A DNA stretch of 64,000 nt. Source: Octopus bimaculoides. Lineage: Eukaryota. Shown here piece after piece: positions 26,874 to 64,000 of this stretch. Numbering within the stretch: position 1 is the stretch's first letter; each line of letters opens with the position of its first letter. The stretch spans positions 18,230,698-18,294,697 of the forward strand of contig NC_068984.1 in assembly GCF_001194135.2 (NCBI RefSeq), given 5' to 3'. The position numbers and the translations under genes were made by a program. Below the pieces are notes generated by a model. That model did no database searches, was not told the origin of the DNA, and saw nothing but the letters and a program-made list of their open reading frames with translations.

Positions 26874-26883
26874 NNNNNNNNNN

Positions 26884-43505: not shown

Positions 43506-43539
<34 letters not shown>

Positions 43540-45390: not shown

Positions 45391-46296
45391 TTTATGGGAA
45401 TATTTGAACCATATCTTGTCTAATTTATCACTGCATTCAGCATTAAACAAGGGAGGTCACTCTAAGAACTCTCGTCTTGTGAAATAGCATTGTTTAAGCA
45501 ATATTTTCAGAACATTTCGAGAAAACAGTTCAAAACCAACCTTTTCGTACTCCAAATTAGGTTGAAAATTATATATAATAAGGACATGAATCCCCCCTAG
45601 GGCTATGCCCCGTTAACTCCTCTATCACTCACTCCCTTTATTTATCTCACTGTATTATGCTGTCAGTATGACTAAGGATGATTGCAGCAGTTCTCTCTGC
45701 TGTTAGCCAGACATTGCTCCCTTTTGCCCTTGCCTGTGTTTCTTAACATCTGTTCACCATCCTCTGTTTGCTTTCCTTCACCCATACCCATTGCTTATCT
45801 CTCAATCAGCCCCCTTCGCTCCTTAATTCTCATCATACTATGCTCCTGTGGGACTGAAAATGGCAGTGGACCTCTTTTGTTCATCATACATTGCCTGTAG
45901 TTAGGACGTCACTTAACCTATTCTGACCCTTTCTCTGTTACTCCTCTGTGATACTTATTGGTACCAAACCAAACCAAACTACTTTCCATTTACCCTGCCA
46001 CTATGTACATCACTCAATCCCTCTGGTCCTTTTCATAACCTCTGTGTAGATAGCAGCATTAGACTACTTTGTGTCAGCAGTCATCCAGATTGGATTGAGT
46101 TGGCTCCAGCCAACAAGTTCACCACGTCCCTTACAAATGCTGACCACATCCGACAATCAGCTGTGGTTGAGGCTGTAATGGATACTCTCTTCCAGTTCCA
46201 CTGCCAAAGACCACAGATGCAGGGGCCCGATTGTGCTTCCACACCCACCCCTGACATGACCGGCCATGTCTTCAGTTGTCCTTCAACTCATTTGCA

Positions 46297-46418
46297 GTGA
46301 GATGGCAGAACCATTACTACACCAGGCAGAATGCTTGACAGCATTTCGTCTGTCTTTACATTTTGAGTTCCAGTTCCATCAAGGTCAGCTTTGCCTTACA
46401 TTCTTTCAGGGTTGATTA
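46297..46418 (+). mobile_element. SINE family C head
   Basis: gagatggcagaacc.ttac..accaggcagaatgctt...ttttgagttc..aaggtcagctttgcctt. Confidence 0.6.
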
Positions 46419-47167
46419 AAAAAAAAAAAAACTGTATTATACCACTTATACTCAATTCACTCTACCTTCATCCTTAACCTCTTATATTGCTTGTCTTAAC
46501 CTCGTGTCACTCTGCCAGTATACTCTTATACTTTTTCTCCTACACATTTTGGGCCTCTGTCTTCCCTTGCTCTATCGCTTGAGTTTCATGAACTACTGAC
46601 ACCACCTTACCATCTCAGGATGAGTTCATCCATGCTTCTGTCACTTATACATTGCACTCTGTAACGAGGCAGATGAGTGACCCCTGAAATTGTAAGTTTG
46701 TCCATTTAGTTATGACTAGGGTGTGGCTACCTCTCTAGTGTAGCATCAAGAAAAATGCACTCAGTACACTGTATGAAGTAGTTGGTGTTAGGAAAGGTGT
46801 CCAGCTAGAGAAAACTAACCAAACTAAAACTGAGGAAGATAAGGTCCCCTTATCTTCTTTCTATCATGGGGCTTCTTTGGGCTCTTTAGTCTTACAAGTA
46901 ACAAGGCTACTAGTGCTGGTGACATGAAAGAATTTCCTAAAATACTCTGTAATGTGGTTAGCATTAAGAAGTGCACCAAGCTGTAGAAACTATGCCACAA
47001 TGAAAATATTAAACTACTTGCATTGTTGATGTGCAGAGAAGAGCATTTACATATCCTGCAAGGATCTTAAGAAAGATTTTTTTTGAGATTAGAGGAGACT
47101 CTGCACCAAGTCTCAAGACAACACCTCTGCTGACTAATATAACAAGTTACAGTTTTAATGATAATTA

Positions 47168-47383
47168 TTATTTGAAATTTTGGCACTAAGCCTGTAATTT
47201 GGAGTGAGTAGCAGGTCTATTTCATCAACCCCAGTATTTGACGGGTATTTTATTTTATCAACCCGAAGTGGATGAAACGCAAAGTCAACCACAGTGACAT
47301 TTGAATATAGAACATGAAGCCAGATGAAATGCCACTAAGCATTTTGTCTGGCATGGTAATATTTCTGCTAACTGCTGCCTTAT
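47168..47383 (-). mobile_element. SINE family C
   Basis: gcaaagtcaacc..tttgaa..gaaatgccactaagcattttgtctggc matches other family C copies. Confidence 0.65.
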
Positions 47384-47384
47384 T

Positions 47385-47437
<53 letters not shown>

Positions 47438-47441
<4 letters not shown>

Positions 47442-47790
47442 CAGAGAGCACAAACCTCCACCAAGGCAATGTCCTCTCAACAATTAGCAAGAGATGATTT
47501 TTAAAATGAGAATAACTGAAATAAACTTGACTGCTCTCACAAACGGAATACTAAAAATGAACTCAGCCGCTCTCAAAAGTTAAGTAAAAAAACGACAGGA
47601 AAAATAATCCAGAATCCTTGTCCAGTACTGAATCGATCCCAAAATCTAATCAGTTCATGCCAGTCACGAGGCCAAACATCCCTGAAAGTTTCATCTGAAT
47701 CCATCCAGCGGTTCTTGAGATATCTTGTCCACGGACAAACAAACAAATATGACTAAAAACAATACCTCCACCTTCGCTAAGGTAGAGGCG
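47438..47790 (-). mobile_element. Helentron/HINE-like non-autonomous rolling-circle element
   Basis: Minus strand: 5' palindrome cctctacctt-agcg-aaggtggagg (47765-47788); 3' sub-terminal inverted repeat ccttggtggaggt; terminal stem-loop tgctc-tct-gagta. Embedded between (AAT)n and (ATG)n. Confidence 0.55.
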
Positions 47791-47811
47791 ATGATGATAA
47801 TAATAATAATA

Positions 47812-47868
<57 letters not shown>
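47790..47868. repeat. (ATG)n/(AAT)n microsatellite abutting a gap
   Basis: Direct reading. Confidence 0.9.
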
Positions 47869-48017
47869 NNNNNNNNNNNNNNNNNNNNNNNNNNNNNNNN
47901 NNNNNNNNNNNNNNNNNNNNNNNNNNNNNNNNNNNNNNNNNNNNNNNNNNNNNNNNNNNNNNNNNNNNNNNNNNNNNNNNNNNNNNNNNNNNNNNNNNNN
48001 NNNNGTGGTGGTGGTTT

Positions 48018-48232
48018 CAAAGTTTAGCACATGGCCGGTAATTTTGGGGGTAAAGGATGAGTTGCTTTCATTAACTCCAGTACTTCATAGGTACTTTATT
48101 TTAACAATCCTGAAAGGATTGAAGGCCAAGTTGACCTTAGCAGCATTTGAAATCAGAATGTAAAGAGCTGGAGGAAATACCGCCAAGCACTTTATCCAAC
48201 GCTCCAACAATTCTGCCAGTTCACCACCTTAA
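48018..48232 (-). mobile_element. SINE family C
   Basis: ggccaagttgaccttagcagcatttgaaatcagaatgtaaag...caattctgccagttcaccacctt. Confidence 0.65.
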
Positions 48233-48848
48233 GAATAATAATAATAAAAAGACGACGACGAGAAATTTGTTGTAGGTTGTATGTATCCTTCTCTATACCC
48301 GAAGTAAAGTTAACTTAGTAATAGCAGAATAATGATGCAAATTAACATATTGCATTTTAGCTGGGCTGTTTCTACTCTACAGTTTTATTCCTCGTTTGCA
48401 TGTTAGAAAAAACAAATGTAATTTTATAATTGGTAAATGAAATCATTAAAATCAATAAAACTGATAGAACTTTCAATCTCTTTTGAACTGTTTTCCGATA
48501 TAATTAGTTAAAGCCTTCCTTTGACACGTCTTCTTAAAGAGGAATATTTTAAAAAATTTATAGTGTTACAATAATGTCTCGAAATCCCTGAGTTTGTTCG
48601 TTTATTTGTTTTACTGTTGTTGCAGTAATTAAGCGTTGTTTTCTCGGTTTGTTCTTTTCTTTTCTGCCAATTCTATAAATTCTGGATTTTGTCTTGGGAA
48701 CAAAATTTTTATGCTCAATTTGTTATTGTATTGCTGTGAACTATCTGTGCATGTACATGGGGAGGTGTGTGTGTGTGTATGTGCATGCGTGGGTAGGTGG
48801 GTGTAAGTGCATGCGTGCGTATGTATGCATGTGTGTGTATGTATATAT

Positions 48849-48880
<32 letters not shown>

Positions 48881-49654
48881 ATGTATATATGTGTTTGTGT
48901 GTATGTATGTATGTATATGTGTGTGTGTGTATGTCTGTGTTTATATATATATATATATATTTGTATTTTCTCACCGTGTTTAAATTAGCTATGATGCAAA
49001 AACAAGAGCATTGTCCTAGCATTTACTGTTGATTGAGAATCAGTTGTTAAAAATATTTCAAGTGTGGTTTTTAGTTAAAAATAACTGAAATGTTACTGCA
49101 ACAGTCTTATCTTGTGAGCAAGGTTTTTACTAAATTAATGAAGAATGTGAAGCATTTCTTAATTCAACCAGAGTTAATTGAATATGGTTCATTACTAATC
49201 ATTTTCCTTTGCTTTAATGAGAAATTACGATAACTTTCGGTTATTTGAACATATTTGTAATGTTTGTTTATCGATGTTATGTTTGAATAGTTAATTAATC
49301 TGTTTAAATTAGGATGTTGTAGAAACGAGAAATAACTAGAATGTTACTAACATTTAACTAAATATAGAAAGTGCTATATAAAAATAATAATACAAAGTCG
49401 CAATTTTAATTAACAGATAAACAGAAATAAGTTGACCTCAAATGAACTTCACTTATTTATTTTTAGGGGGTGGGGGTTAAAGCTTGTTGTGTCCCTAGTT
49501 TAACATCCCCATATTACCATTGCGTTGATAAGTACCTACTCAGTTGCAAGCAGGGATCAGGCTTGTAGCTGGGAGTTTTCATGATCTTGGAACACACTAT
49601 GACCTTTGACATTTCACTAGATGTCTAAAACTAACTTCATTAGACACTTCACTC

Positions 49655-50435
49655 TTCACTTTCTTTTCTGGCATCTGTGGACTCTGAGCCAACGTTGATA
49701 CCACACATCACTTTTTACTAACATGCAAACCCCCACATCCTATTTATAACTGAAACACAAATCTCTGAGATCTATCCTTCACTCAGTTCTATCCATCACT
49801 CAGCTCTATCCATCACTCACCGCTGTCCATTGCTCAATTTTATCTGTCATTCAGTTCCATCCATCACTCAACTCTATTCATCGCCCAGTACTATCTGTCG
49901 CTCAGCTGTATCCATCACTCAGCTCTATCCATTACTCAGCTGTATTGCTCAGCTCTATCCATCCCTCAGTTCTATCCATCACTCAGCTCTCTCCATTGCT
50001 CAGTTCTTCCTGTCATTCAACTCTACTTGTCATTCAGCCCTATCTCTCACTCAGGTGTATTTGTCACTCAGCTCTATCCATCCATTGGTTCTATCCATCG
50101 CTCAGTTCTATCCATCACTCAGTACTAATCATTGCTCAGTTTTACCCACCATCAGCTCTATCCATCACTCAGCTCTGCTGTCCAGGCTACATTCTGAAAG
50201 ATAGTATGTGGTTCCATTCTCCCTGCCAATCCTCCCTTCCTCCTGGATATCAGCAACGAAGACTTGCAATTACTCAGCTTCAAAGTCTCCCCGTAATACA
50301 TCTGCTTCCTCTACCATTCTCCAAACTGCTCCAAATCGCCGACACCTCTTCAACCGTATCTTATCTTACATTTAGAACAGCTTTCTCTCTTCATCCCTCT
50401 CCAAAATTATTGCCATCAGTGATTGCAATGCTCAC
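49655..50435 (+). mobile_element. Decayed non-LTR retrotransposon AP-endonuclease fragment, interrupted by a minisatellite
   Basis: Across frameshifts it reads FTFFSGICGL*ANVD..HHFLLTCKP/HILFITETQISE, then PGY, YICFLYHSPN and IIAISDCNAH. These resemble the NIRGL, ETQ, YRSP and GDFN motifs of APE domains. Confidence 0.6.
49781..50180 (+). repeat. 17-bp minisatellite, about 23-24 diverged copies (consensus ACTCAGCTCTATCCATC)
   Basis: Direct reading of tandem units such as actcagttctatccatc, actcagctctatccatc and gctcagctgtatccatc. Confidence 0.9.
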
Positions 50436-50570
50436 ACTGGTGGTGTGGAGAGGGGAGGCCGGTATGCATGGACGACTGCTGGTCTTCCATAAACAACCTT
50501 GCTCGGACTTGTGCCTGGGAGGGTAACTGTCTAGGTGCAATCCCATGGTCAGTCATGACCGAAGGGGGTC
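50436..50570 (+). mobile_element. Probable SINE 3' body inserted after the LINE endonuclease relic
   Basis: GC-rich block ggagaggggaggccggtatgcatgg.cgactgctggtcttccataaacaacc that I recall as a common octopus interspersed repeat. Only one copy in the window. Confidence 0.4.
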
Positions 50571-51120
50571 TCAGCACATACACACCAAGTGTAGAAGCAC
50601 TTCCATTCACTTCAAACTAAAAAGGTTACCATACCTGACAATGTCCTTTCCATTACCTTCAAACAATGCAACCCAGAAATCACCCTTAAACGCACAAAAG
50701 TTTTAAACTCCTCCCCCTCTCTTTCTCTCTCTCCCTCTCCCCCTCTCTCTCTCCCTCTCCCCCTCTCTCTCTCACACACACACGTGTGTATTCTTAGGAA
50801 AACCTCTGTATTCCAATAAACCAAAGTTAATGGAGTTGGCCACCAGCACCCTATTGAATGTCTCTCATTCCTTAATGACCACAAGTACAGCTTCTGTATA
50901 CCAAGGTTTGCTGAGGACCATCTCTCCTATGCCATTACTTTGTGGTGTCTTGCCTTCAAGTTTAGTGTAACAGTGTTGTTGCTCTCAATATCACCTGTGC
51001 TTTCAGCTGTGTCATGTCTAAATCCACTGTGGAACCTACCCACCTGTTGACTCTGTCCTCCATTCATCTCTTGGGTCACCAGGGTTTTCCTGTCAGTTTG
51101 CCACTATTGTAGCATGTTGT

Positions 51121-51443
51121 GAAGGTGCATGGCTTAGTGGTTACAGTATTTGGCTCATGATTGTAAGGTTGTGGGTTCAATATCCAGCAACACATTGTGT
51201 CCTTGAGCAAAACGCTTAATTTCACTGAGCTCCAGTCCACTCAGCTGAAAAAAAATGAGTAGTACTTATATTTTTCGAAGGGCTAGCATTGTCACACTCT
51301 ATACCATGCTGAATCTCCCTGAGAACTACATTAAGGGTACGTGTGTCTGTAGAGTGCAGCCTCTTGCATGTTAATTTCTTGAGCAGGCTGTTCCGTTGAT
51401 CAGATCAACTGGAACTCTTGTCTTTGTAACTGACAGAGAGCCA
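51121..51443 (+). mobile_element. SINE family D, full length
   Basis: gaaggtgcatggcttagtggtt...gggttcaat...gagcaggctgttccgttgatcagatcaactggaac. Confidence 0.8.
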
Positions 51444-52154
51444 TTTTAAGACCCCATCCAGAGAAAGGCAACTCAGCTGGTTAGCTCCAAGTCTCCCACA
51501 GACATGTTGTCTCCCATCTCTGCTGTTTTTTCTAGCACTATTACAATACCCTCTGTTACTCTGGGTTGTTAGTCTCATGCCACCTCTGCTCAAGAACTCT
51601 CAACTCACCTATTACTTTTAATTTCATTACCTATATTGTGTTGAATTTAACAGGTCCCACTAACCTCTTCAGTTAGTGTTAGCCTGCTTCATTCACCCCC
51701 TCTCCCCCACTTCTCTGTCTTGCCTGCAGTTATCAACCAGCAAAAACTGAAACAGAACATCAACAGTATCTATTTCACCAGTTTCAGCATGTGTAGGGCC
51801 CCTCGTTCCAAAGTTCCAAATCAAACTGATAAATTTAACTTGTCTTATTGACTTTCTTGTGGGCATTTTTTTCCATAGAATAGTGAGTGGAGAGGTACTT
51901 TGAAGTCTGCTGTATAGGCTTGTGGTTAGGGGGCAGAGATGTAGAGGTAAACTCAGAGACCACCTTGGGCAACACACACCCTTGCTATGCCGATACATTT
52001 TTGTGTTCTAATACACTTGGTATTTTAATACAATATTCAGTTATTTTATTTATCACTTTCAATAAGATTGCTATAAATCGTGACTGAAATATTTATTACA
52101 TTATTACATATGCATATACATATGTATATATACATATATATATGTGTGTGTGTG

Positions 52155-52189
<35 letters not shown>

Positions 52190-52596
52190 CTTTTGAAACG
52201 CCTGATATATGAAACAAATGAAAGACCCATAACATAAAGGAAATCTTTTAACAATAAAATGTTTATTATTAAATATTACAAAAGAAAATAAATTATGAAA
52301 GTTTTAAACCTTGTTCTAATATTTGTCAGAGAATCTGCCATTCTGTTTCACTCTTTGCACCTCTCTCATCATTCACTCTAAACTTCTCTTCCATTTTCTC
52401 AACCGGAAAAATTCCCCTTTCAAAAAAAAAAAAAAAAAAATCAAAAAGTTTATAACACTTAAATAATCCTCTTCTACTTGATGACTGAATTAACGTCTAG
52501 TGTAACAATAATAATTTGTGCTTTCATGTATGCTTGTGTACACATGTGTCTGTCTATGTACGTATGTGCAAATAGAAGTTCTCTTCTTTTTTTTTG

Positions 52597-52630
<34 letters not shown>

Positions 52631-54210
52631 CATTAACGTTATTATTAATTCACATAATACTTAATTTTTTTTTCTCTCTGTGAGTACTTTAAGTGTACAA
52701 CACTTGTAAAGCCAGTTCATAATTACTTGCTAACATCGTTGTGTGTTTTTTTTTTTTTTTTTTTTNNNNNNNNNNTTTTTTTTTTTTTTGTTATTGTTAT
52801 TGTTTTTTTTTTGTTTGTTTTTTTCTTTTTCGTTTTTTCTTTTTTTTCTTTTTTTTTGAAAGATCAGTATGAGTATGGTATAAATATATGCAGGATCACA
52901 TCCTGGAATTTGTGGTCTTCCGGAAAAAAATAAAATAATAATCAATACGTTTTTGTGACATATTGAATTGCATGTATATTCAAATTTCTTTGTTGATTAG
53001 ATATTCATAGTAGTTAGAGTTGGTAGGTGTCTGTTACCAACTCTGCTAGAATTCTTGACTTCGCACTGCTTATCACCTTCAGTCTCACTACTGCTACTGT
53101 GTCTCTGTGATTAGCAACAATTTCATGTGGGAACAGTTGTGCTATGGAAGTAATTTGAACCTCTGTCATACAAATATAATTGTATTTCTCTTCTGTATTG
53201 GCACAACACATTTTTGGGGGGTTTTTGGGGTTATTTTTCTTTGTTTTTTTCATTTCATTTTTTGAACACAATTTCATAGAATTAAATGCCAGCATTGTGT
53301 GAGCTGTGTTGTATTGCTGTTGTTGTTGTGTATGTGTTTGGATATAGAGAGGTGTGTGTGTCTGTGAATACACACATCAGGTAAAGCAGTGTGTAAATGT
53401 ACATATGTATATTTGTACACATAAGAGATATGTGTGTTAGTATATACTGTATTTTATACACAGTGCAGATATCACTAGTGTGTGTAGACCATTTTATACA
53501 CACACAGGTAGTACAGGAATGTGTGTACACTTGGATTTTTTTTTATATAAACACAGGTGTGTGTGTATGTGTGTGCGCATAACAATATTTGACTATAACA
53601 CAGTAGATGTAAGTATATGTATGTAGATAAAATAAATATGTTTGGAATTAAAACAAACATTTTTTTTTAACATACAGGCTAAACCTTACTGACTCTTTTT
53701 CTTTTTGTTTTATTTATTTTTAATGTTACATAATTTTAACTGTCATTCTCAGAGAGAGTGAGTTCAAATGGAAGAACTTCCAAGTAATTCTCTTCTTCTC
53801 CAACAATTGCATACAGTTTCTTGATGTCTTTGTTCTCTTCCATTTAGATTCATTCTCTGTGCTCTATAAGTGTTCTTTATTGGTATATATACCTGCTGCT
53901 TAGAATGATTAAAACTAAACCCATTTTTGCAACTGTTTTCAGATTTTCCCCGATTCTTGATGAAATTCTTAGAAATCTTAGAAATTCTTATACTTGTTGT
54001 TTTCCTATCTGTTATTGGTTTCTTTGAAACAAAATTTATTCTTCATATCAGTTGTTTGTCTCCTCCTGTGTATATTATTTTTGAATAATCATTTATTTGT
54101 CTGCAGTCTACAAACAACTATGATTGATTTTTCCCATGAAAAAAAAAGAAGAGAAAGAAAATAAAGATTGGAGATTAGGGGGTGGGGGTATTTTCTTTGC
54201 TGGTAGATAT

Positions 54211-54216
54211 TTTATT
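54211..54216 (-). terminator. Candidate proximal polyadenylation signal (AATAAA) of the nested gene
   Basis: AATAAA on the minus strand about 15 nt after the stop. Further AATAAA hexamers lie downstream (e.g. 54092-54097), so the site actually used is uncertain. Confidence 0.35.
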
Positions 54217-54230
54217 AATATTTTTTTTGT

Positions 54231-56405
54231 TCAGACACTAACTGTTGGTACATATTTAAGCTTATCTTTCTTTTCATCTTCACTATCATCATCATCATCA
54301 TAATCATCATCATCTTCATCATCACTATCCAACCATTTCTTAGAACTATATGACAAAGCAGATGTGTATGTGGGAGATGTTAAATATTGGTTTGTTGTTT
54401 GTGTTGAAGAATCTGCATTTGAAAGGCTAACTAACTCTAACTTGTCTCTAGCAAGCCACAAATATTCGTTTTCCCTATTGGTTTTCATCTTTGAAAATTG
54501 TTTGTTCAGCTCATCCATGACAAGAGCTTCAGCAATACTGTTCTCTTGCATTGGTGAGACTGATTGATATTTCTTATCCATCTCTTCTTCTTTCTTTGCT
54601 TTGTCTTTTATGTGACAGATAAGACACACCACTGGGCCGACAATAAGCCAGATGGCAATTAAGCAGCCCATTCCAATACCAAAACCAGCACTGAGTGTCA
54701 ACGTTTTGGAAGGGTTTTTTTGTGTTGACACATCAGTTTGGGGTGTAACATTGTCTGTTGGTTCTTTAGGGATGACTTGCTCTGTTGATTCAACTGAAAC
54801 CAACTCCTTATCTGAGCAGCATTTGCAGTTGGCATCATCAGAACAAGGTTTTGTGCACAGGTGTGTCATTTTAGAAGGGTCCAGAGTTGCAGTGGCACTT
54901 AGAATAAGATGCTTATTTTTTGTTGTTAAAGATAATGCTGCAGTTGCTGAAGTAGGAGTAGAAAGGACAGGTTTGAGAAATCCATGTTTAGTTGGTGTTG
55001 GGTGTGTGTGTTGGGAATTAGTTGGCACAATAAGTATATCTGGTATCATTTCTGAGGGCCTCAGAAATTCTGTTGTCACTGCAGCCAATATTTTCCCGTT
55101 TAAACCCTTTTTAGTAAAATCTTTGATTTTGTTTGTAACTAAGGGTTTATGGCTTTTGGTGGTTTCTGAATCTTCTGTTAGATGAAGCAGACCACTTCTT
55201 GAAGGCATCAGAGTAGGTTTTATTCCCTTTTGCTGATGATGGGAATTAACATCTAAGGATAATATATTCCTTGGTGGTCGTTGTGTACCATATTTTGGTG
55301 GGTTTGTATAGGGTAAGTTTTTACTATCATATTTTCTTCTCGATGACCCATACCGTGTATGGGTGCTTGGTGCTGGTTGTGCAAGTGGGGGTAAGTTTGG
55401 ATCAAAATCTTCTTCACTTGTTGACAGGGGTCTTTCTTTACTTTGAGAACCTTTCGAACTGCTTTTGTCTTTTATATTTAAAAGGAATGGTGGCTGAGCT
55501 AAATATTCTGGGATGTCACTGGAATTTGCCTCTTTGAGAGGCATCTCCTCAGTTGTTGAATAGTTTTCAAACTGAGTTTCATTAATAAGCGTTGTCAAGG
55601 TACTAAGTACAGGTGTAGGTGTTAACAGAAGTATTACCCTATCAGGTTTATGTTGTGAACCTGTTCTCAACATACTTTCTGAAACTGTTTGTTGCAATGT
55701 TGATGATTGTATCGTATTATCAGCTATAGACATTTTGTTTGTTGTCGTAACTGAGTGTAAAGATGTTAGAACTGGATGCTTTCTTTTTACATTGAAATCA
55801 TCCTGACTAGTCACTGGGTTCTGTTGATCAAAAGACGAGCTCTTAAGTGGAGGTTGGCCTGAAACCATAACATTTTCAGGTGAAATCTTACTCAACTCTG
55901 GAGTTTTTACAGAACTAGAATGTATTCCAAGAGCACTTATCTGGCGCCACTTACTAGAAAATCTCGAATCTTGTTTAGTCTTCATGTCTCGAAGTGACAG
56001 ATTTAGATGTGGACTATAATTCTTCCGTTCTTTATGTTTACTATAAGCCCATTGATAGTTGTTGTTGTTGTGCTGGTGGTATTTTTTAGAATGTAAAGGT
56101 GTTTCTGTGCTTGCAGCTATCAAATTTGGGAGGTCATTAAGTGCCAGCTGTTTATCTTTAAGTGCTGGTAAATGATAACTTGCTGTTTCCATTACCCTGA
56201 AATGTTGAACATTCTTGATTCTATTTGGAAAGCCTTCTGTAGTAATTGGAATTTTATTATATTGCACTGACAACGATTTGGAGTTCATTGCTGTTGTCGT
56301 TTCTTGATAATGTACAGCTGAACATAGTGTATTATAACACAATAGTAAAATATTAATCCAACATGGAAAGTGTTTGGAAAATACTTTGTAATCCATTCTT
56401 AACAT
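54231..56405 (-). CDS. Uncharacterised 724-aa single-pass type I membrane protein (signal peptide, S/T/P-rich mucin-like ectodomain, Cys cluster, TM helix, acidic cytoplasmic tail), nested antisense in a KIF13 intron
   Basis: 2175-nt uninterrupted ORF in AT-rich DNA. True ATG at 56405 with in-frame upstream TAA (56430-56432); TGA at 54231. Hydrophobic N-terminus (CWINILLLCYNTLCSA); TM about aa 573-597 (AGFGIGMGCLIAIWLIVGPVVCLIC) followed by basic HIKDKAKK. No family recognised. Confidence 0.85.
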   Translation of the reverse strand: MLRMDYKVFSKHFPCWINILLLCYNTLCSAVHYQETTTAMNSKSLSVQYNKIPITTEGFPNRIKNVQHFRVMETASYHLPALKDKQLALNDLPNLIAASTETPLHSKKYHQHNNNNYQWAYSKHKERKNYSPHLNLSLRDMKTKQDSRFSSKWRQISALGIHSSSVKTPELSKISPENVMVSGQPPLKSSSFDQQNPVTSQDDFNVKRKHPVLTSLHSVTTTNKMSIADNTIQSSTLQQTVSESMLRTGSQHKPDRVILLLTPTPVLSTLTTLINETQFENYSTTEEMPLKEANSSDIPEYLAQPPFLLNIKDKSSSKGSQSKERPLSTSEEDFDPNLPPLAQPAPSTHTRYGSSRRKYDSKNLPYTNPPKYGTQRPPRNILSLDVNSHHQQKGIKPTLMPSRSGLLHLTEDSETTKSHKPLVTNKIKDFTKKGLNGKILAAVTTEFLRPSEMIPDILIVPTNSQHTHPTPTKHGFLKPVLSTPTSATAALSLTTKNKHLILSATATLDPSKMTHLCTKPCSDDANCKCCSDKELVSVESTEQVIPKEPTDNVTPQTDVSTQKNPSKTLTLSAGFGIGMGCLIAIWLIVGPVVCLICHIKDKAKKEEEMDKKYQSVSPMQENSIAEALVMDELNKQFSKMKTNRENEYLWLARDKLELVSLSNADSSTQTTNQYLTSPTYTSALSYSSKKWLDSDDEDDDDYDDDDDSEDEKKDKLKYVPTVSV

Positions 56406-56580
56406 TCTTTCGTTTTGTTTGTCAATTTTTTAAAAATTATTGTCTTTCTTTTATTTATTGAAGCACATTTTTTCTGAGGCACTATTATATTGTTTTTGTT
56501 TTCTTGGTCTTGTTTTTTCTTTTTCTTCATCTGTGCTTCCTCTATCGTTAAATGTCGATTCTGAAAGAGAAAAAGTAGAA
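56406..56580 (-). promoter_or_regulatory. Candidate 5'-UTR and splice acceptor of the nested gene
   Basis: Minus strand reads ttctactttttctctttcag|aatcg, with the AG at 56562-56561. This gives 155 nt of 5' UTR before the ATG at 56405. Confidence 0.6.
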
Positions 56581-58088
56581 GTTAGTGACTAGGGCTCAGA
56601 GTTACGTTCAAGTTAATGTTTTTTTTAAAAAAAAAAGTTTGTAGATAAAAGTACTGGTTTTGTTGTGTGATTTTGCTAACACTTTTTTATTTTTGATAGT
56701 AGCCTTTCTTCTTTATAAGCTAAATATCTACTGCTTTTTTTCTAATCTCTTCCTTTCTCTCTCTCATTCACACACGCACAGTGAGTGATAGATAGATAAG
56801 GTAACACTCATGAAATATATGCTAATTATTTTGACTTAATTAGAAATATATCTAGTGGGGAACACCAACTTAAAACTTTGAAAGAGAGATGGAGAGATTA
56901 TCTTTAATATGTCATTGATTTATCAATTTTAATTAATTGCACATCTTAATCATTGAGAATTTATCACTCATTAAAATCATTAGATCCTTGAGTACCATAC
57001 TTTTGCTACTAAAGAGAAATGCATGTTCTTTCTGAGAGAAGCCTGATTTACATAGCTATATTTTAGCAGGAAGAAAAGGAAGAAATTGAATTGCATTAGC
57101 ATATTCTTGGTAATTTAAGTGGAGGCAGCAGTGCTGGTGGTTTTCGTTGCCATCACCCCTCACCAATACTGACTTCAAAATTTCAACTACTTCGTCTAAA
57201 TTGAATAAGTTAAACAGTTTTAAAAAGTCTAGATATGATATATAATATTTTATATGAGAGAGAAAGCTAGAATACTTAAAGTATCTCTTCATCTCTGTTG
57301 TTCCTTACTGGGAAGAGGTACACAAAAGATAGAGAGCAGTACTAGTCAGGCTTTTAACAATTGAATATAAAAATTGTTTTGTTTCTTTCTTGTGTTTATT
57401 ATAATTTCTTTTATCATTTCTTTTCTAGATAAGACAATATTGAATTAAACTTCAAATAGAATATATGGCTTCCATTTGTGAAACGCATTTATTTTAATGT
57501 TGACCTGAAATTTCTTCTGTCTATATTAGCATATTTACTGAATTCCATGGAGATTTCTATTGTTGAGGAAAATGAAAACTGGAAAAAAAAAATAATAATA
57601 ATGATGATGAATAATAAAAATATTCGCAATGCTAAAACCAAATTTCATATTTTCTTTATTCTCATGTTCTGCTTTACCAACTAAATATCAGATAAGTCAA
57701 GTCTATCTTCGGTAGCTTTACTATTTTAACTATTAAATGGAAATCTACTGCAAATATACTTTCTAGCAGATGTGTAGCAATATCTAAATAAATAATGATT
57801 TTTCACATCAACAGTAACAAACCTAAGGAAAATGTTTTGAAAAAAATAGCGTATGCTCTTTTATTCTCAGTGGAGAAAGGTATTTGTTAAGCTTTGAAAT
57901 AGAATTCCCTTTGATAAAACCCTGCTTTTTATCTTGTACTTCATATAAGTAACCCGATAAACATTGAACTCTATTGAACGACATTTCTTTCTTTTTTTTC
58001 CTTTTATTTTTTATTTTTGCATACATATATATATAAATATATATATATATATTTATATATTGTACTTTTATTGAATAATTGCATGATT

Positions 58089-58260
58089 CTCACCGGCATC
58101 GATTTTTTTATCTATTTCATTTACTTAACCCATCTCGTTTAAGGATTACATGATGAAGAAGCGGGTGATGGGGGATGAGAGGGATGGATGTCATTCAAAT
58201 TTTGTAACCCTTTAACAGATCTCGTGTACAAATATCAAAAGAAATATCGAATGTCAAACA
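58089..58260 (-). promoter_or_regulatory. Candidate non-coding first exon and donor of the nested gene
   Basis: Minus strand CCG|GTGAGA donor (GT at 58093-58092). Six CpGs within 58081-58260 in otherwise CpG-poor DNA. The 5' boundary is arbitrary. Confidence 0.35.
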
Positions 58261-59883
58261 TGTATATATAGCTCTCTCTCTCACACACACAAACATATAT
58301 TTTAAATATCTGTATGACATTAGGTGTGGTTTTGTGTGTAGATAGATTTGTATGCATATATATTTATATATATATGCGTGTGTTTATTTACATATTTGTT
58401 TATTTTTCTATATATAAATAAACTTATAAATGTAAGAATGAGTGTAAAATTAAGTTTGCTTTGAAGCCATTTGGTTTTGGGTTCCAGCCTACTGTATGGC
58501 ACCTTTGGCAAAACTCTTCTGCTATATATATGGGCCTTACAAAGCCCTATGAGCCAAATGGTAACGATGTGCCTCTCTCATAAACAACAGACCCTGAAGC
58601 ATAATGGTTTTCAGTGTGCATAAAGGCCAGTGAAATAAAAAAAATACCTAACTTGAAAAGTAAGCAAGCATTGGTGGCAATGAGGCATGTGACCGAGAAA
58701 TACTTGTCCAACTTATATTAGCAGAGAAACACATGATTTGTGTGTGTGTGTGTGTGTGTGTATTCTAGATGTATGTTCCTAATATATTTATATATGTGTG
58801 TGTGTGGGGGTTTGCATGAGCAGTATGGGTGAATGGTTTAGACGTTTGCTTCATAACAAGGAAGTCTTGGGTTCAATCTCACTGCATGGCATCTTGGGGA
58901 AAGTGTCACTCAAAGTAATTCAAAGACACTACCTGATCAGACACACATTATATCATTAAGCAGGCAATTCAGTTGAGCAAACAACTGAGAACCATCTGTC
59001 TGAGACACATACATACATACATACATTGTTACACACACACACATATTTCTTATATGGATCATAATGTGCTTGTTGTTCCACAGTCACTCTTTGAACCTTT
59101 CAAATATTAAACTAGCTTTGCTCATCTTGCTATTTAATTTGCCTCTCAGCCTCTCATAACCACAAATCCTATTGCCCAGTTAGGTCAAGTGTCGAGCTTC
59201 CGCCAGCTTCTGCCCATCAATGGTATTGACTCCGGCTATGTCATTTGGTTTGTATTAGGGCTTGGCTGGAAGAGAACTTCATTCACACGTATGTGTATGT
59301 GTGTGTGTTTTGTTTTTCCCTGCTTTCACGGGTTAGACAAATGATACTGAGGTATTATTTTACAGCCAGATGCCTTCCTGTTGCTAACCCTTACCTGTTT
59401 TTCAAGTAAGAGGTCTCTTATTTCACACAGCTTTGGAGGCACAAAGCAAGCAATTGGTTTATTGACAAGAGAATCAACTGCTGTAACACACCATCTCTAC
59501 ACCACAACTTCTGTTTAAGCAAGCAAGGTGTAAATACACACAATCAGGTGAAAAAACTGTCAATGTTATTGGTCGATAGTGTATATAATTTAATGATCCA
59601 TGATGGATTATATTCTCACTAACAAGCATATGCATAACATGTGTACACATTCCTGCACATGGACACACTCAACACAATTATTTACTACAGATATGATCTC
59701 CCATGGATACACCTACACCTAAGTGCATATGTGGGTATATATAGTTGTGTGTGTGTGTGTGTGTGTGTAATAGTATCTGTGAGATTGTGAATTTAGTAAA
59801 TCATTTTGTATGAGTATGTATAATACATATGTGGAACTACATAGAATTATACATGCCTGAAAAGTCTTGTATGTGCTTATGTT

Positions 59884-60265
59884 GTGTGGCTGTGTGGTAA
59901 GTAGCTTGCTTGCGAACCTCATGGTTCCGGGTTCAGTCCCACTGCGTGGCACCTTGGGCAAGTGTTTTCTACTATAGCCTCGGGTTGACCAAAGCCTTGT
60001 GAGTGGATTTGGTAGACGGAAACTGAAAGAAGTCCATTGTATATATGTATATATATATGTGTGTGTTTGTGTGTCTGCGTTTGTCCCCCCACCATCGCTT
60101 GACAACTGATGCTGGTGTGTTTACATCCCTGTAACTTAGCGGTTTGGTAAAGAGACCGATAGAATAAGTACTAGGCTTACAAAGAATAAGTCCTGGGGTC
60201 GATTTGCTCGACTAAAGGCAGTGCTCCAGCATGGCCACAGTCAAATGACTGAAACAAGTAAAGGA
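59884..60265 (+). mobile_element. SINE family A, best-preserved copy
   Basis: A box tggctgtgtggtaag, B box gggttcagtccc, retained CpGs, tail ggcagtgctccagcatggccacagtcaaatgactgaaacaagtaaagg. Confidence 0.85.
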
Positions 60266-60595
60266 GTGTGTGTGCTTTACAGTGGGCATATAACTCCTAC
60301 CAGCATCAAATTATATAAACTATCTTCCAAGAATTTAGTTTATAGACAAACTCTCTCTCAAGAATGCTGTTGACTTGGAAGGTTATGGAGATCATGGCAA
60401 CATACGTCACTTCTCCATCTTAGAAGTAGGAAAACCTGACAGAAAAGCATTGTTACACAAGGTTTAAATGTAGCAGTAGTAGAAGTGGGTGTTTAGGTCA
60501 ACGACTTATTGTTTGACCTGCAGGAATTTCTGAGGTCATACTGCTATTGATAGAAGATCTTTGCTAAACATTATTAGACTTCGGGATGTTTCAAG

Positions 60596-60629
<34 letters not shown>

Positions 60630-60973
60630 GATTCAAAACTAGTGTTTTCATCTTCTATAACATTCTGAGACTAAGACTTGCATTTTGAGCTAAGCATAAT
60701 GGTTAATTATAACACTTGAAAGCAAATAGCTATATATAGCCACATACACACATATATACATGCGTACATGCATGTGTATATGTATACTTGTAATTTTTAT
60801 CAAATTGTCAGTTTGGTAAGTGCCATGTACAAAACCCTTGGCCTTTGAGTCACTTTTAGAACTTTCTGTTGGTAAAAATAATAAAAGAAATATATACTCA
60901 TGTACTGAGTTCTATTTCACCTGTTTGTTCTACCAAACTTATATATATATATATATATAGGTTTATATATATA

Positions 60974-61800
60974 NNNNNNNNNNNNNNNNNNNNNNNNNNN
61001 NNNNNNNNNNNNNNNNNNNNNNNNNNNNNNNNNNNNNNNNNNNNNNNNNNNNNNNNNNNNNNNNNNNNNNNNNNNNNNNNNNNNNNNNNNNNNNNNNNNN
61101 NNNNNNNNNNNNNNNNNNNNNNNNNNNNNNNNNNNNNNNNNNNNNNNNNNNNNNNNNNNNNNNNNNNNNNNNNNNNNNNNNNNNNNNNNNNNNNNNNNNN
61201 NNNNNNNNNNNNNNNNNNNNNNNNNNNNNNNNNNNNNNNNNNNNNNNNNNNNNNNNNNNNNNNNNNNNNNNNNNNNNNNNNNNNNNNNNNNNNNNNNNNN
61301 NNNNNNNNNNNNNNNNNNNNNNNNNNNNNNNNNNNNNNNNNNNNNNNNNNNNNNNNNNNNNNNNNNNNNNNNNNNNNNNNNNNNNNNNNNNNNNNNNNNN
61401 NNNNNNNNNNNNNNNNNNNNNNNNNNNNNNNNNNNNNNNNNNNNNNNNNNNNNNNNNNNNNNNNNNNNNNNNNNNNNNNNNNNNNNNNNNNNNNNNNNNN
61501 NNNNNNNNNNNNNNNNNNNNNNNNNNNNNNNNNNNNNNNNNNNNNNNNNNNNNNNNNNNNNNNNNNNNNNNNNNNNNNNNNNNNNNNNNNNNNNNNNNNN
61601 NNNNNNNNNNNNNNNNNNNNNNNNNNNNNNNNNNNNNNNNNNNNNNNNNNNNNNNNNNNNNNNNNNNNNNNNNNNNNNNNNNNNNNNNNNNNNNNNNNNN
61701 NNNNNNNNNNNNNNNNNNNNNNNNNNNNNNNNNNNNNNNNNNNNNNNNNNNNNNNNNNNNNNNNNNNNNNNNNNNNNNNNNNNNNNNNNNNNNNNNNNNN
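60974..61800. other. Assembly gap (827 N)
   Basis: N run; large enough to hide an exon. Confidence 1.
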
Positions 61801-62039
61801 TATATATATATATATATATATATATGTTTGTATTACATCATAGCCTTCCCTTAGATATGGACAACTTGTGTGTACGAGCAACAGTGAGAGTTTAAGGCAG
61901 GGCCAAATTCTAAATGGTTTAATTGCTTTGTGTTGAGTGCACCCAATCATATATATATGTATGTATGTTTATATAAATTTGTGTGTGTGTGTGTGTATAT
62001 ATAACTGATTAGTATTTGCTTTTTGAACTATTGGTCATA

Positions 62040-62260
62040 GCTGAAATGTCAGTGTTGTTCTTCTGACTCAGATTAGCCGTGATCAAGCAGAGCCTCAGAT
62101 CAAAGTTGTCCCAACCATGATAATCTCAACCTCTTCTACGTGTATCAAAGACTTCATAATCCAGTGCATCATTTATATTTAAGATGATGGCGCTTGATAC
62201 AAGGATGATTTTACTGCTATTTCTAGTATACCAAGCCATCATATCATTGGATATTCATCA
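62040..62260 (+). mobile_element. Interspersed repeat family F
   Basis: gatcaagcagagcctcagatcaaag..cca.ccatga...tttaagatgatggcg..tgatacaaggatgattttactgctatttctag. Confidence 0.5.
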
Positions 62261-62328
62261 TCATTCTTAATGTAAAATCTGGTTGAGCAGTGTTTATCAA
62301 CTTAGATAGAAAGCATCATCACATTTCA

Positions 62329-62368
<40 letters not shown>

Positions 62369-63795
62369 ATATGTATGTATATATTCGTGTGCCAGAAACT
62401 GCTGTTACTGTAGTAGTTTCTTTGTAACACATTTTAGCTTCAACTAGTTGTCAGTTTCTATAAATGGTTGTTTAATTTTCAATAGGTATCTCTTATTTAG
62501 TCATGTACACGTTCAGGAAACAAGGTGATTCTTATGGCGAACTTAGCACAAGAAAAGCAAGAACTCTTTCCTCATTCCTCTCCCCTACCCACTCCTCTCT
62601 CTATAGCTCTCTCTCTCTCCTCCCTTACCCACTCCTCTCTCTAACGCTCTCTCTCTTTCTCTCTCTCTCTCTCTCTTTCTTTCTCTCAATAATAGATTCA
62701 TACCTGATTTAAAAAAAAAAAAAAAATTGCATAACTGATGAAAATATTGATAATTTTTCAAAAAATTTACACACACACACAAAACATTGCATAAAATGCA
62801 TGCTTATCATCATCACCACTTTGTACATTGGTGTGAAAATACACACACACACACACACACATGCATACATCACACACACACAAATACATACATACACACA
62901 CACGTGCATACATATCACACACACTCGCACACAAATGTAAAAATATGAATATTTAAATGCCGAGACATATAATGTGCACATACATATGTACACATCATAT
63001 ACACACATACTTAGAAATAAAAAAAAAATGATATTATATATAAAAATAAAATGTGTATGTATGTACATAATCATAAATGCACATACGCCTTATTTAAAAC
63101 GTGTTTAGGGTCATGCGTGAGATTTAACAATTTCCATATTTCCTCTGCTTTGATTCTGCTTAAACGAGAATTTGTTCTTGCAAACGAAGTGATGTATGCT
63201 GCTGAAAATTTGATTCCAGTTTAAGTGGTCCCTGTTTCCAGGACTTAATGTAGGTCAGGTTCATGTTAATGACATAGGATCCAGTTGACAGCTAAAAGCC
63301 TTTCTCATGAACTTCAGGGGAAAAAAAATACACTGTTTCTCTATGTAGCTAATGAACTTTTATTTTATTTTCAAGATATTTTTTTCTTTGTAGTTTTTTT
63401 TTTTTTTAAGTCTTAAAAGAAAATATGGACATTCTTGTCCATCTTTACAAAACTCACAATCACACACACACACTCAGAAATACAAGATTAACTCATACCC
63501 TAAAGATACCACTTCTGGATCTCACTAAATCATGCATATATACTCTTGAATGCATACATGCATTCATGGTCTCTTATATACACATTAGAAGTATGCAGTT
63601 TCTCTCTCCATCTTCTCTCTCTTTCTCTCTCACACACACAACTTTGCACACTCTGACTTCTCATTCACACTCAAACTGTCCTCCCCTGGTTCAATTAACC
63701 TTACACTTCTGTGTACACATCATCTCACACTCATTGATTCTACGTTTTGTTTAACCACAAAACTGCCAACCCTGTTCATTCTTGCAGAAAACACT

Positions 63796-63863
<68 letters not shown>

Positions 63864-63955
63864 CTCACAGAAACATCCACTTATAAATACACTTACATGT
63901 TGATATGCATATACATGTACCTTTATATGCCTCTCTGTGTGTGTGTTTATAAATG

Positions 63956-63998
<43 letters not shown>

Positions 63999-64000
63999 GT

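Follow-up and report, generated by a model that had tools for sequence, protein, structure and literature searches.

A Nested Coleoid Gene in an Intron of an Octopus KIF13-Type Kinesin Gene and Its Putative Single-Pass Surface Protein

Introduction

Podoplanin and CD34/podocalyxin are vertebrate type I sialomucins in which a signal peptide, an unstructured ectodomain rich in Ser, Thr and Pro (S/T/P) and a single transmembrane (TM) helix of the GxxxG type are combined with a short charged tail for attachment to cortical scaffolds (ERM or PDZ proteins). MUC1-type mucins have a large S/T/P-rich extracellular region, a conserved membrane-proximal region, a TM segment with adjacent cysteines and a tail for signalling or sorting. 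The octopus protein described here resembles both groups in these features, its signal peptide being putative. As for genomic position, opposite-strand nesting takes in nearly 10% of Drosophila genes (PMC3814207), and nested opposite-strand genes are common, with functions mostly unrelated to those of their hosts (PMC3814207, PMC5174743). The present locus resembles such genes of other animals in that it is short, has its coding part in compact form and lies wholly in the long intron of a larger gene; two points are particular here, namely the splitting of a motor domain by the host intron and the age of the nested gene, which is shared with decapodiforms.

The Reading Frame and Its Transcript

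The window, that is, the whole stretch of 64,000 nucleotides that was analysed, comes from Octopus bimaculoides chromosome CM046604.1. The nested gene and its flanks are laid out as follows.

54231..56405, minus strand: complete coding sequence (CDS) with ATG start, 724 codons plus stop (TGA at 54231-54233)
56406..56560, minus strand: proximal 5′ UTR in the coding exon; candidate 3′ splice site at 56561/56560, where ttctactttttctctttcag is followed by AATCGAC
53713..54216, minus strand: 3′ flank with candidate polyadenylation signals, AATAAA at 14, 133, 190, 349 and 512 nt past the stop and ATTAAA at 506 nt

The 724-codon frame is a genuine protein-coding gene of coleoid cephalopods, kept by selection. 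From the base composition of the window one stop per ~13 codons is expected; the probability of a stop-free run of 724 codons is ~3e-25, and ~4e-20 such ORFs would be expected in the window. The frame is intact in four taxa, O. sinensis and the decapodiform orthologs among them, and thus the intact gene opposite KIF13 that had been read from the sequence alone is confirmed, the feared disruption in relatives not being found. The O. sinensis ortholog is 95% identical and carries the name "uncharacterized protein LOC115211118", while the second in-frame ATG of the octopus frame (M4, 'MDY') lines up with the start of the decapodiform ortholog. Between the two octopuses dN/dS is 0.235 (dS 0.094), and over codons 501-600 it is 0.02; the two decapodiform sequences give 0.27 (dS 0.51), and 0.08-0.09 over the TM helix and proximal tail. 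Between octopus and decapodiform dS is saturated and the frame is still intact. By these ratios the gene is under purifying selection.

The remaining long 'ORFs' of the window are artefacts of N-gaps or microsatellites, and a plus-strand ORF of 177 aa (54652-55185), which has no family match, is the antisense shadow of the CDS. There is no second copy in the window, because no other ORF there resembles the 724-aa ORF, and no long repeats were found to flank it. A P-element-type transposase ORF adjoins the cuttlefish ortholog. A transposon or viral origin was rejected on two grounds, namely the lack of flanking repeats and the absence of this transposase from the octopus loci.

An in-frame stop is located 27 nt 5′ of the ATG (~56432), so the octopus coding sequence consists of one exon. 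In cuttlefish, the ortholog yields an mRNA that is both spliced and polyadenylated. Logan contigs L003, L004, L006 and L007 carry the ortholog, whose cluster numbers 46 member sequences assembled in many runs; of these contigs, L004 comes from run SRR19578103, in which hatchlings of Sepia esculenta were sequenced by poly(A)-selected RNA-seq. When L003 is compared with the genomic contig L002, two collinear blocks 4.5 kb apart are obtained, with GTAAGT...TTTCAG boundaries on the ORF strand, which gives the cuttlefish transcript a separate exon in the 5′ UTR and a GT-AG intron of 4.5 kb. By analogy with the cuttlefish, the octopus mRNA very probably has an additional non-coding 5′ exon, and its 3′ splice site was placed in the same manner, from the decapodiform genomic acceptor 98 nt upstream of the ATG that is used in the cuttlefish mRNA. 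The gene described in the original prediction as single-exon therefore has one coding exon but is probably not a single-exon gene; the term is right for the CDS only. A search for the octopus 5′ exon by similarity to the cuttlefish/decapodiform one returned microsatellite-level matches only, and CpG content revealed no clear island.

The Host Gene and the Nesting

The plus strand of the window contains three exons of the host gene and the intron that follows them.

14380..14574, plus strand: kinesin P-loop exon (GSGKSYTMMG...), KIF13B residues ~102-166, 5′ boundary approximate
31256..31339, plus strand: exon matching KIF13B residues ~168-195
43091..43225, plus strand: switch I exon, AG acceptor before 43091, GTAAGT donor after 43225
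43226..64000, plus strand: intron of >20.7 kb extending past the window end, with the nested gene inside it

Together the exons cover KIF13B motor residues ~102-240, and they match KIF13B (2e-40) better than KIF1A (3e-31). The KIF13B query used in exon mapping served as a probe only; exon identities rest on the PDB sequence search and on Pfam architecture. In O. sinensis the host product of 2247 residues has Kinesin, FHA, KIF1B, DUF3694 and CAP_GLY domains. With this domain set complete in O. sinensis and the window exons closest to KIF13B, the host is of the KIF13/Khc-73 type. In other parts, the host gene contains retroelement debris.

On one side of the CDS is the host exon that ends at 43225, and on the other a next host exon beyond 64000. 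No later motor exon (DLAGSER onward) occurs in 43226-64000, and a called opposite-strand gene with a product of 2232 residues covers the entire 22-kb locus around the ORF. The nesting is read from the CDS, and the next host exon lies outside the window. Assembly gaps interrupt the host intron at 47869-48004, 52766-52775 and 60974-61800. The same nesting is found in O. sinensis, where 8.7 kb around the ORF are collinear with the O. bimaculoides assembly. As two independent chromosome-scale assemblies agree, a misassembly separating the ORF from KIF13, which had been named as a possible objection, does not apply. The gene is thus nested antisense in a KIF13 intron, as had been claimed; the intron splits the kinesin motor domain, and two octopus species show the arrangement. 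Of the decapodiform sequences, neither L002, with 10 kb of upstream and 2.3 kb of downstream sequence, nor the 6.9-kb cuttlefish contig L006 contains a kinesin exon. The nesting is best read as ordinary insertion into, or retention in, a long intron, and not as functional coupling.

Architecture of the Protein

From the N-terminus to the C-terminus, the following parts can be distinguished in the 724-aa product.

56316..56405, minus strand: signal-peptide-like N-terminus, aa 1-30, with basic n-region (R3, K7, K11), core FPCWINILLLCY and small residues (LCSA before V)
55296..56315, minus strand: fast-evolving S/T/P/K-enriched ectodomain, aa 31-370, predicted unstructured (pLDDT <35), 21-25% identity to decapodiforms
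54804..55295, minus strand: conserved membrane-proximal ectodomain, aa 371-534, 55-57% identity to decapodiforms
54687..54803, minus strand: stalk, aa 535-573, with the only positionally conserved sequon, N552-V-T (NAT in orthologs)
54606..54686, minus strand: TM helix and cytoplasmic end, aa 574-600, GFGIGMGCLIAIWLIVGPVVCLICHIK, 81-85% identity between octopus and decapodiform
54411..54545, minus strand: two predicted cytoplasmic helices, aa 621-665, IAEALVMDELNKQF and ENEYLWLARDKLELVSLS, the latter with Y648-x-x-L
54273..54329, minus strand: acidic run read from the sequence, aa 693-711, DSDDEDDDDYDDDDDSEDE
54234..54248, minus strand: C-terminal PTVSV, aa 720-724, candidate ligand of a PDZ domain, with hydrophobic residues at 0 and -2

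Conservation differs strongly along the chain. Octopus-decapodiform identity is highest in the TM helix, the best conserved part of the protein, and then amounts to 64-69% in the two tail helices, with the proximal and distal ectodomain at the values listed above; the last five residues are 100% identical.

The N-terminal core of the octopus protein is weak: its best 11-residue Kyte-Doolittle mean is 2.0 (at residue 13) and no 19-residue window exceeds 1.6, while the cores of the decapodiform orthologs are stronger (11-residue means 2.5-2.7). All four orthologs show the pattern of n-, h- and c-regions, with a short h-region in the octopus. A single strong hydrophobic segment follows at ~575-597, with a 19-residue peak of 2.63 (568-601), and directly after it HIKDKAKK puts positive residues on the cytoplasmic side. 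With a signal-like N-terminus, one TM peak towards the C-terminus and a positive flank, the type I topology proposed earlier is coherent.

The ectodomain contains 12.2% S, 11.0% T, 8.5% P and 8.8% K, in keeping with the enrichment first reported, and S+T+P reaches 31.7%. No tandem repeats occur inside 54231-56405. Six sequons are present (NYS129, NLS135, NET275, NYS281, NSS294 and NVT552), against a shuffled mean of 7.0 (sd 2.3); their number equals the shuffled level and is therefore no enrichment, so that the N-glycosylation sequons of the original prediction exist as listed, but without excess over shuffling and with positional conservation at N552 only. For the same reasons 'mucin-like' is a loose term: it fits the S+T+P enrichment, but not the modest share of these residues, the lack of tandem repeats or the chance-level sequons. 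The label 'receptor' is unsupported, no ligand-binding domain being detected in Pfam scans or AlphaFold models.

The membrane-proximal block (aa 371-534) contains the conserved stretches TQRPPRNILSLD, PSRSGLLHLTED, KPL.TNK, ILAAVTTEF..SEMIPD and LILSATATL.PS.MT, and ends with five invariant cysteines (C517, C521, C527, C529 and C530). AlphaFold predicts beta-strands at 457-461 and 486-507 (a hairpin at 486-507) with low confidence (pLDDT <35). On the whole AlphaFold2 was uninformative, the mean pLDDT being 31 for the full length (3 sequences) and 33 for residues 369-724 (4 sequences).

The TM helix is marked by G576xxxG580, W586, G590-P591, C594 and C597, and the tail comprises aa 598-724 (127 aa). 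Helices are predicted at 577-609 (TM), 621-639 and 645-662, again with low confidence. Since Y648-x-x-L lies inside a predicted helix, it would be ill suited to adaptor binding. The acidic run is present, and PTVSV identical, in 4/4 cephalopod orthologs. PTVSV fits the class II PDZ pattern (V-S-V); with Val instead of Ser/Thr at -2, it departs from the class I C-termini that occur in the distant relatives described below.

Distant Relatives and Known Surface Proteins

Full-length relatives were found in cephalopods only, which upholds the lineage restriction that had been proposed. Word-indexed homology searches returned three cephalopod clusters only, and a query with the module alignment added just two short fragments. 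In Pfam scans the ORF protein and nine relatives gave only sub-threshold noise (Podoplanin, PGA2 and MtrF), and among PDB sequences the module profile found nothing below E=0.4; membership in a well-described family, which would have removed the novelty, was thus not found.

Profile searching of 1.84 billion proteins produced 17 distant matches (E 2e-11 to 1e-3), all within profile positions ~545-669, that is, the TM helix and the juxtamembrane segment. All are uncharacterized, with no Pfam family and no described function, and the four with a species name are molluscan (scallop, abalone and Gigantopelta); they include XP_069106194.1 of Argopecten irradians, XP_041360776.1 of Gigantopelta aegis and XP_046559055.1 of Haliotis rubra, besides P0019-P0035. 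The TM pattern is [ST]-A-x-[FT]-G-I-x-x-[GA]-C-x4-W-x3-G-P-x2-C-x2-C-[RK]-x-[RK]-D, and ~20-35 residues past it a helix of the form [LI]-x-E-[AE]-[MLI]-[VI]-x-x-E-L follows; among the 20 family members G, P and C are invariant, and I, E and L nearly so. Alignment to P0019 with hhalign has a probability of 98.7% across the TM helix and both tail helices, and P0019 has the second helix as well (Y-x-x-L-A-K-D-[KR]-x-E-L). Class I PDZ-type C-termini (such as DTEV, DTAL, DTNL, DTNV or ITSF) are found in about half of the members. Judged by its sequence, the octopus protein belongs to a molluscan family that has not been described before and is defined here by the TM and juxtamembrane module. Its molluscan relatives share with it the module, the type I arrangement, the low-complexity ectodomain and in many cases a PDZ-type C-terminus, but in sequence and length (180-1116 aa) their ectodomains bear no relation to one another, and they lack the cephalopod ectodomain blocks and PTVSV.

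Among known families, Podoplanin (PF05808) comes closest, with a weak match over the stalk and TM helix in which the window protein scores 11.8 bits (E=0.31) and P0019 18.5 bits, both below the cutoff of 30; no significant sequence relationship exists, and the protein was not assigned to this family. CD34_antigen gave no match in the Pfam scans. The DT-x-[LV] ends of the octopus protein's relatives resemble the DTEL/DTHL ends of CD34 and podocalyxin. In contrast to podoplanin and CD34, the octopus protein has a much longer tail, with two conserved helices, an acidic run and the C-terminal PTVSV, as well as the five-cysteine membrane-proximal block and a TM helix far more conserved than the ectodomain. 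The analogy with MUC1-type mucins is weak because tandem repeats are lacking and S+T+P is only 32%; by a repeated PTS domain the protein is no mucin, and neither SEA (not even at E<=1) nor any other mucin-associated domain was found in the Pfam scan.

Proposed Role and Alternatives

Taken as a whole, the locus is a genuine coleoid gene, nested in the octopuses, and its product is probably a scaffold-anchored, sialomucin-like surface protein that would shape or mark a membrane domain. The product would enter the secretory pathway and span the membrane once, with the N-terminus outside. Its distal S/T/P-rich part would form an extended, glycosylated and largely unstructured stalk, and the membrane-proximal block of 160 residues with its five cysteines would be the sole candidate for a folded or interacting extracellular part. 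The TM helix, in which a GxxxG face is combined with a Gly-Pro kink and with two cytoplasmic-end cysteines at positions typical of palmitoylation, would be more than an anchor and probably packs against itself or a membrane partner. In the tail, the basic juxtamembrane cluster, two amphipathic helices, Yxx-Leu, the acidic run and PTVSV could connect the protein with cortical scaffolds or with sorting proteins, a PDZ domain being the likeliest contact. The working would then be similar to that of podoplanin/podocalyxin: the tail would position the protein, and the glycosylated ectodomain would provide bulk or anti-adhesion. We infer glycosylation, surface localisation, palmitoylation and PDZ binding from motifs that chance also produces.

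The conservation of the TM helix can be read in another way, possible though rather unlikely, in which the protein is an auxiliary subunit or co-receptor (cf. single-pass auxiliary subunits with a terminal PDZ ligand, such as Shisa/CKAMP proteins) whose TM and juxtamembrane segment binds a multi-pass channel, transporter or receptor in the bilayer, the ectodomain being minor. It is this segment that is best conserved and that scallop, abalone, Gigantopelta and unnamed proteins with unrelated ectodomains have in common; codons 501-600 give a dN/dS of 0.02 in the octopus pair, and PDZ-type C-termini in many members would also suit such a role. However, no partner is known, Pfam and PDB sequences reveal no similarity to described auxiliary-subunit families, and GxxxG together with juxtamembrane cysteines fits self-association and raft targeting equally well.

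More doubtful is a processed receptor or precursor, in which the membrane-proximal ectodomain would be the functional, ligand-binding or adhesive part, and R-P-P-R (376-379) a proprotein-convertase site freeing the variable N-terminal half. R-x-x-R is only a minimal furin motif, with Asn directly after it, although RPPR is as invariant as the five cysteines; and while aa 371-534 keep their identity to decapodiforms at saturated dS and contain predicted beta-strands, the block has neither relatives outside cephalopods nor a domain match, the confidence of the model is <35, and the cysteines, being odd in number, point to no particular fold.

A wider proposal must be considered improbable: that the octopus protein stands for the cephalopods in an undescribed, possibly mollusc-wide single-pass family whose mark is not the ectodomain but an ultra-conserved TM and juxtamembrane module (GxxxG, W, GP, CxxC and RxRD, with an ExxVxxEL helix), that this module is a dedicated in-membrane docking device with a conserved partner and is positioned by PDZ-type tails, and that a functional or regulatory link has kept the cephalopod gene in the KIF13 motor-domain intron since before the octopus-decapodiform split.

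Coupling to the host in the narrower sense, whereby KIF13 would either carry the protein as cargo (e.g., by way of a PDZ scaffold of the Dlg type) or be regulated by the nested antisense unit, which would account for the retained nesting, is very improbable. KIF13B binds the GUK domain of Dlg1, and the PDZ domains of Dlg1 bind C-termini of membrane proteins, a route with which the conserved PDZ-type C-terminus would be compatible, but Val at -2 does not suit Dlg PDZ domains, which prefer class I ligands. The nesting is common to two octopus species; as this pair is only ~5-9% diverged, the sharing says little, and the decapodiform contigs L002 and L006 show no kinesin exon. It also counts against coupling that nested opposite-strand genes are common and in most cases have no functional relation to the host (PMC3814207, PMC5174743). 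A functional link to KIF13, including the cargo-motor idea raised as speculation, is unsupported.

That the locus is no functional gene of the octopus at all, but an ORF that arose by chance or is decaying, an envelope-like gene of transposon or viral descent, or an artefact of assembly that puts it inside KIF13, is extremely improbable, for the assembly gaps, the retroelement debris and the transposase beside the cuttlefish ortholog are outweighed by purifying selection on a frame intact in four taxa, the spliced poly(A) mRNA of the cuttlefish, the lack of flanking long repeats and of a second ORF copy in the window, the absence of the transposase from octopus loci and the agreement of two assemblies.

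Significance

The apparent oddity of the locus is removed: the 'hidden' ORF proves to be a true gene, already catalogued though uncharacterized, and it lies in KIF13 in an ordinary nested arrangement. Nor does it remain orphan-looking, since it is conserved from octopus to decapodiform at saturated dS, is already in public protein sets and has its module in other molluscs. It is already in the databases as an "uncharacterized protein", a fairly ordinary lineage-restricted gene and no major surprise. What is mildly useful is the recognisable TM and juxtamembrane module across otherwise unrelated low-complexity surface proteins, with named members in cephalopods, a bivalve and gastropods. Should this module serve to dock a specific partner, it would open a way to a set of lophotrochozoan surface proteins that are now invisible to homology-based annotation, and also a marker gene whose expression could be checked directly in cephalopod cell atlases.

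Nested Gene and Its Host

An ORF scan of the window found a 724-codon frame on the minus strand (54231–56405) running from ATG to TGA, which confirmed the intact 2.2-kb coding sequence of the original prediction. The G+C content of the window is 33–37%, about one stop per ~13 codons is expected on the minus strand, the probability of 724 codons without a stop is ~3e-25, and ~4e-20 frames this long are expected per window. The remaining frames above ~260 aa are spurious, caused by N gaps or microsatellites, and a 177-aa ORF at 54652–55185 (+), opposite the nested coding sequence on the KIF13 sense strand, is an antisense shadow of it, with neither a family match nor kinesin similarity. Since an in-frame TAA is located 27 nt 5′ of the ATG, the whole coding sequence lies within one exon. 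The earlier description as single-exon holds for the coding sequence but probably not for the mRNA, to which a further exon is likely to belong, as the spliced mRNA of a cuttlefish suggests. AATAAA occurs at 14, 133, 190, 349 and 512 nt 3′ of the stop in the window.

The exact protein is encoded once, at ~18.27–18.30 Mb of O. bimaculoides CM046604.1 (GCA_001194135.2), and an opposite-strand gene with a 2232-residue product covers the entire 22-kb locus around the ORF. Three exons of this host were located in the window by alignment to the KIF13B motor:

~14380–14574 (+): host exon, GSGKSYTMMG...
31256–31339 (+): host exon
43091–43225 (+): host exon with AG acceptor and GTAAGT donor

Together they cover KIF13B motor residues ~102–240, and their best PDB matches are KIF13B structures (2e-40 vs 3e-31 for KIF1A). 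The remaining motor sequence, from DLAGSER on, has no exon in 43226–64000, which places the ORF within an intron longer than 20.7 kb that splits the motor domain. For motor residues 1–101, no exon was detected 5′ of the P-loop exon in 1–14379 (+), so the first host exons are located before the window start or inside the gap at 5545–6444. The O. sinensis ortholog (XP_036358353.1, "uncharacterized protein LOC115211118", 725 aa) is nested likewise in a gene whose 2247-residue product contains the Kinesin, Kinesin_assoc, FHA, KIF1B, DUF3694 and CAP_GLY domains, i.e., the KIF13/Khc-73 architecture. The proposed antisense position in a KIF13 intron was thus borne out by exon mapping and by the same nesting in O. 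sinensis. Misassembly separating the two genes, a possibility raised for checking, is unlikely because the two assemblies are collinear across 8.7 kb around the ORF, despite the gaps at 47869–48004, 52766–52775 and 60974–61800.

Repeats and gaps in the window are as follows:

5545–6444, 23663–24382, 26874–26883, 42608–42836, 47869–48004, 52766–52775, 60974–61800: assembly gaps (N runs)
24891–25445 (+): reverse-transcriptase fragment in a KIF13 intron (Pfam RVT_1, E=4.5e-12, YADD motif), a decayed non-LTR retroelement
~21141–21428, 23529–23660, 26629–26870, 38248–38469 (+): interspersed repeat copies, translation ...RLQSDLAEFLQLDALPNANHSESVV.AF..., a probable transposon family (SINE or other) dispersed across KIF13 introns
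49771–50176: 17-bp tandem array, ~24 copies, consensus TCTATCCATCACTCAGC, locally richer in G+C

The gaps are often bordered by TG/TA microsatellites, and three fall within the intron holding the nested gene; the apparent 446-nt "inverted repeat" at 60940–61832 is the N gap listed there (60974–61800). The stop-free 258-aa frame at 49750–50523, which has no family match, is a spurious product of the 17-bp array.

Selection and Transcription

Selection on the gene is evident between O. bimaculoides and O. sinensis, whose proteins are 95% identical (dN 0.022, dS 0.094, dN/dS 0.235), with nucleotide identity of 96.5% in the coding sequence vs 92.7–95.3% in the flanks. Two decapodiform orthologs were also obtained: P0002 (724 aa, from a 33-kb ENA genomic contig) and P0003 (729 aa, the representative of 46 clustered sequences whose assemblies come from many SRA runs). 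Between them dS is 0.51 and dN/dS 0.27, falling to 0.08–0.09 across the transmembrane helix (TM) and proximal tail; compared with the octopus protein, identity is ~40%, dS is saturated and the frame is still intact. Octopus and decapodiform lineages split roughly 270 million years ago, and the gene is therefore old within coleoids. There is hardly any doubt that the gene at 54231–56405 (−) is real.

Expression was observed in whole hatchlings of Sepia esculenta, in RNA-seq with poly(A) selection (SRR19578103). Alignment of the cuttlefish contig L003 to L002, a decapodiform genomic contig, gives two collinear blocks separated by 4.5 kb. At their boundaries the genome has GGAAAA/GTAAGT ... TTTCAG/AAATCATG and L003 reads GGAAAAAAATCATG, so L003 is a spliced mRNA on the ORF strand. 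Its non-coding first exon is at least 577 nt, with the acceptor 98 nt 5′ of the ATG. The candidate octopus counterpart of this acceptor is a polypyrimidine-AG, ttctactttttctctttcag/AATCGAC, 155 nt 5′ of the ATG; the octopus first exon was not found by similarity search. The longer cuttlefish contig L006 (SRR19578107) indicates that the A-run at the L003 end is genome-encoded and that transcription runs further. L006 also carries, at 4797–6932 (−), an open 711-aa P-element/THAP9-type transposase (E=1.6e-30) with TNP-like RNase H, GTP-binding insertion and HTH domains. Situated ~2 kb 3′ of the ortholog and on the other strand, the transposase is transcribed together with the 3′ region of the gene or was assembled into one contig with it; neither the octopus loci nor L002 contain it.

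Protein Anatomy and Relatives

The protein is very probably a type I membrane protein, and the topology predicted originally was supported by one strong TM segment, a signal-like N-terminus and positive residues after the TM. In the N-terminus, basic residues precede a hydrophobic core, which is short, and small residues (..LCSA/V) come next, so that its sequence looks like a signal peptide; the cores are stronger in decapodiform orthologs than in octopus. The region of aa 31–370, predicted to be unstructured, is enriched in S, T, P and K and is 21–25% identical to the decapodiform proteins. With S+T+P at 32% and no tandem repeats there, the protein, called mucin-like in the original prediction, is not a classical mucin. 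The ectodomain has six N-glycosylation sequons vs 7.0 ± 2.3 expected from composition, among which N552 (NVT/NAT) alone is conserved in position. At aa 371–534 identity rises to 55–57%, with the conserved blocks TQRPPRNILSLD, PSRSGLLHLTED, ILAAVTTEF..SEMIPD and LILSATATL.PS.MT, terminating in C-x3-C-x5-C-x-C-C. The TM segment (aa 574–600, GFGIGMGCLIAIWLIVGPVVCLIC) reaches 81–85%. The tail begins with a basic cluster and a variable linker, followed by two predicted helices, IAEALVMDELNKQF and ENEYLWLARDKLELVSLS (64–69%). After these come another variable part and the acidic run DSDDEDDDDYDDDDDSEDE, and the protein ends in PTVSV, which is invariant.

A Pfam scan assigned the protein to no family (Podoplanin E=0.31, 11.8 bits vs a cutoff of 30), and the label of receptor could not be demonstrated. 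When a profile of three cephalopod sequences was searched against 1.84 billion representative proteins, 17 further proteins were recovered (E 2e-11 to 1e-3), all confined to profile positions ~545–669, i.e., the TM helix and first cytoplasmic helix; their ectodomains are unrelated, low-complexity and of widely differing lengths. In the module alignment, G, P and C are invariant and I, E and L near-invariant; the TM pattern is G-I-x2-[GA]-C-x4-W-x3-G-P-x2-C-x2-C-[RK]-x-[RK]-D, followed after 20–35 residues by [LI]-x-E-[AE]-[MLI]-[VI]-x2-E-L. The second cytoplasmic helix is also common to the distant relative P0019 (hhalign probability 98.7%). Named distant members are "uncharacterized protein" entries of Argopecten irradians, Gigantopelta aegis and Haliotis rubra. 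Members contain no Pfam domains, the module profile has no match in PDB, and the C-terminus is of the class I PDZ type in about half of the members (e.g., DTEV, DTAL, DTNL, DTNV, ITSF). Three short members (P0020, P0029 and P0033; 311–352 aa) form a subgroup with Cys-Pro replacing Gly-Pro in the TM helix and with the C-terminus ...APLAS.E.LDTEV in common.

Possible Role

Tentatively, the most likely role is that of a scaffold-anchored, sialomucin-like surface protein. Judging from known motifs, the protein would enter the secretory pathway and take type I orientation, to which its signal-like N-terminus and the positive charges following the TM point, and the ectodomain would be extended and glycosylated. 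The TM helix may be more than an anchor, having a GxxxG packing face like that of glycophorin A and a Gly-Pro kink, while the cysteines at its cytoplasmic boundary are of the kind usually S-acylated. The tail may bind cortical or sorting machinery through its basic juxtamembrane cluster, amphipathic helices, Y-x-x-L and acidic cluster, with the hydrophobic-x-hydrophobic C-terminus as a candidate PDZ-type ligand. As the chief alternative, the protein would be an auxiliary subunit that docks through its TM on a multi-pass partner, a reading that would better account for the TM being conserved more strongly than any other part. The third option is a processed receptor or precursor, which would make use of the five-cysteine block and the invariant RPPR. 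A functional link with KIF13 finds no support, since the two octopus species are too closely related for their common nesting to mean much and nested genes on opposite strands are common (PMC3814207, PMC5174743).

In summary, the gene is lineage-restricted as proposed but not an orphan, and databases already list it as uncharacterized; what is new is solely that a common TM/juxtamembrane module was recognised in molluscan surface proteins.
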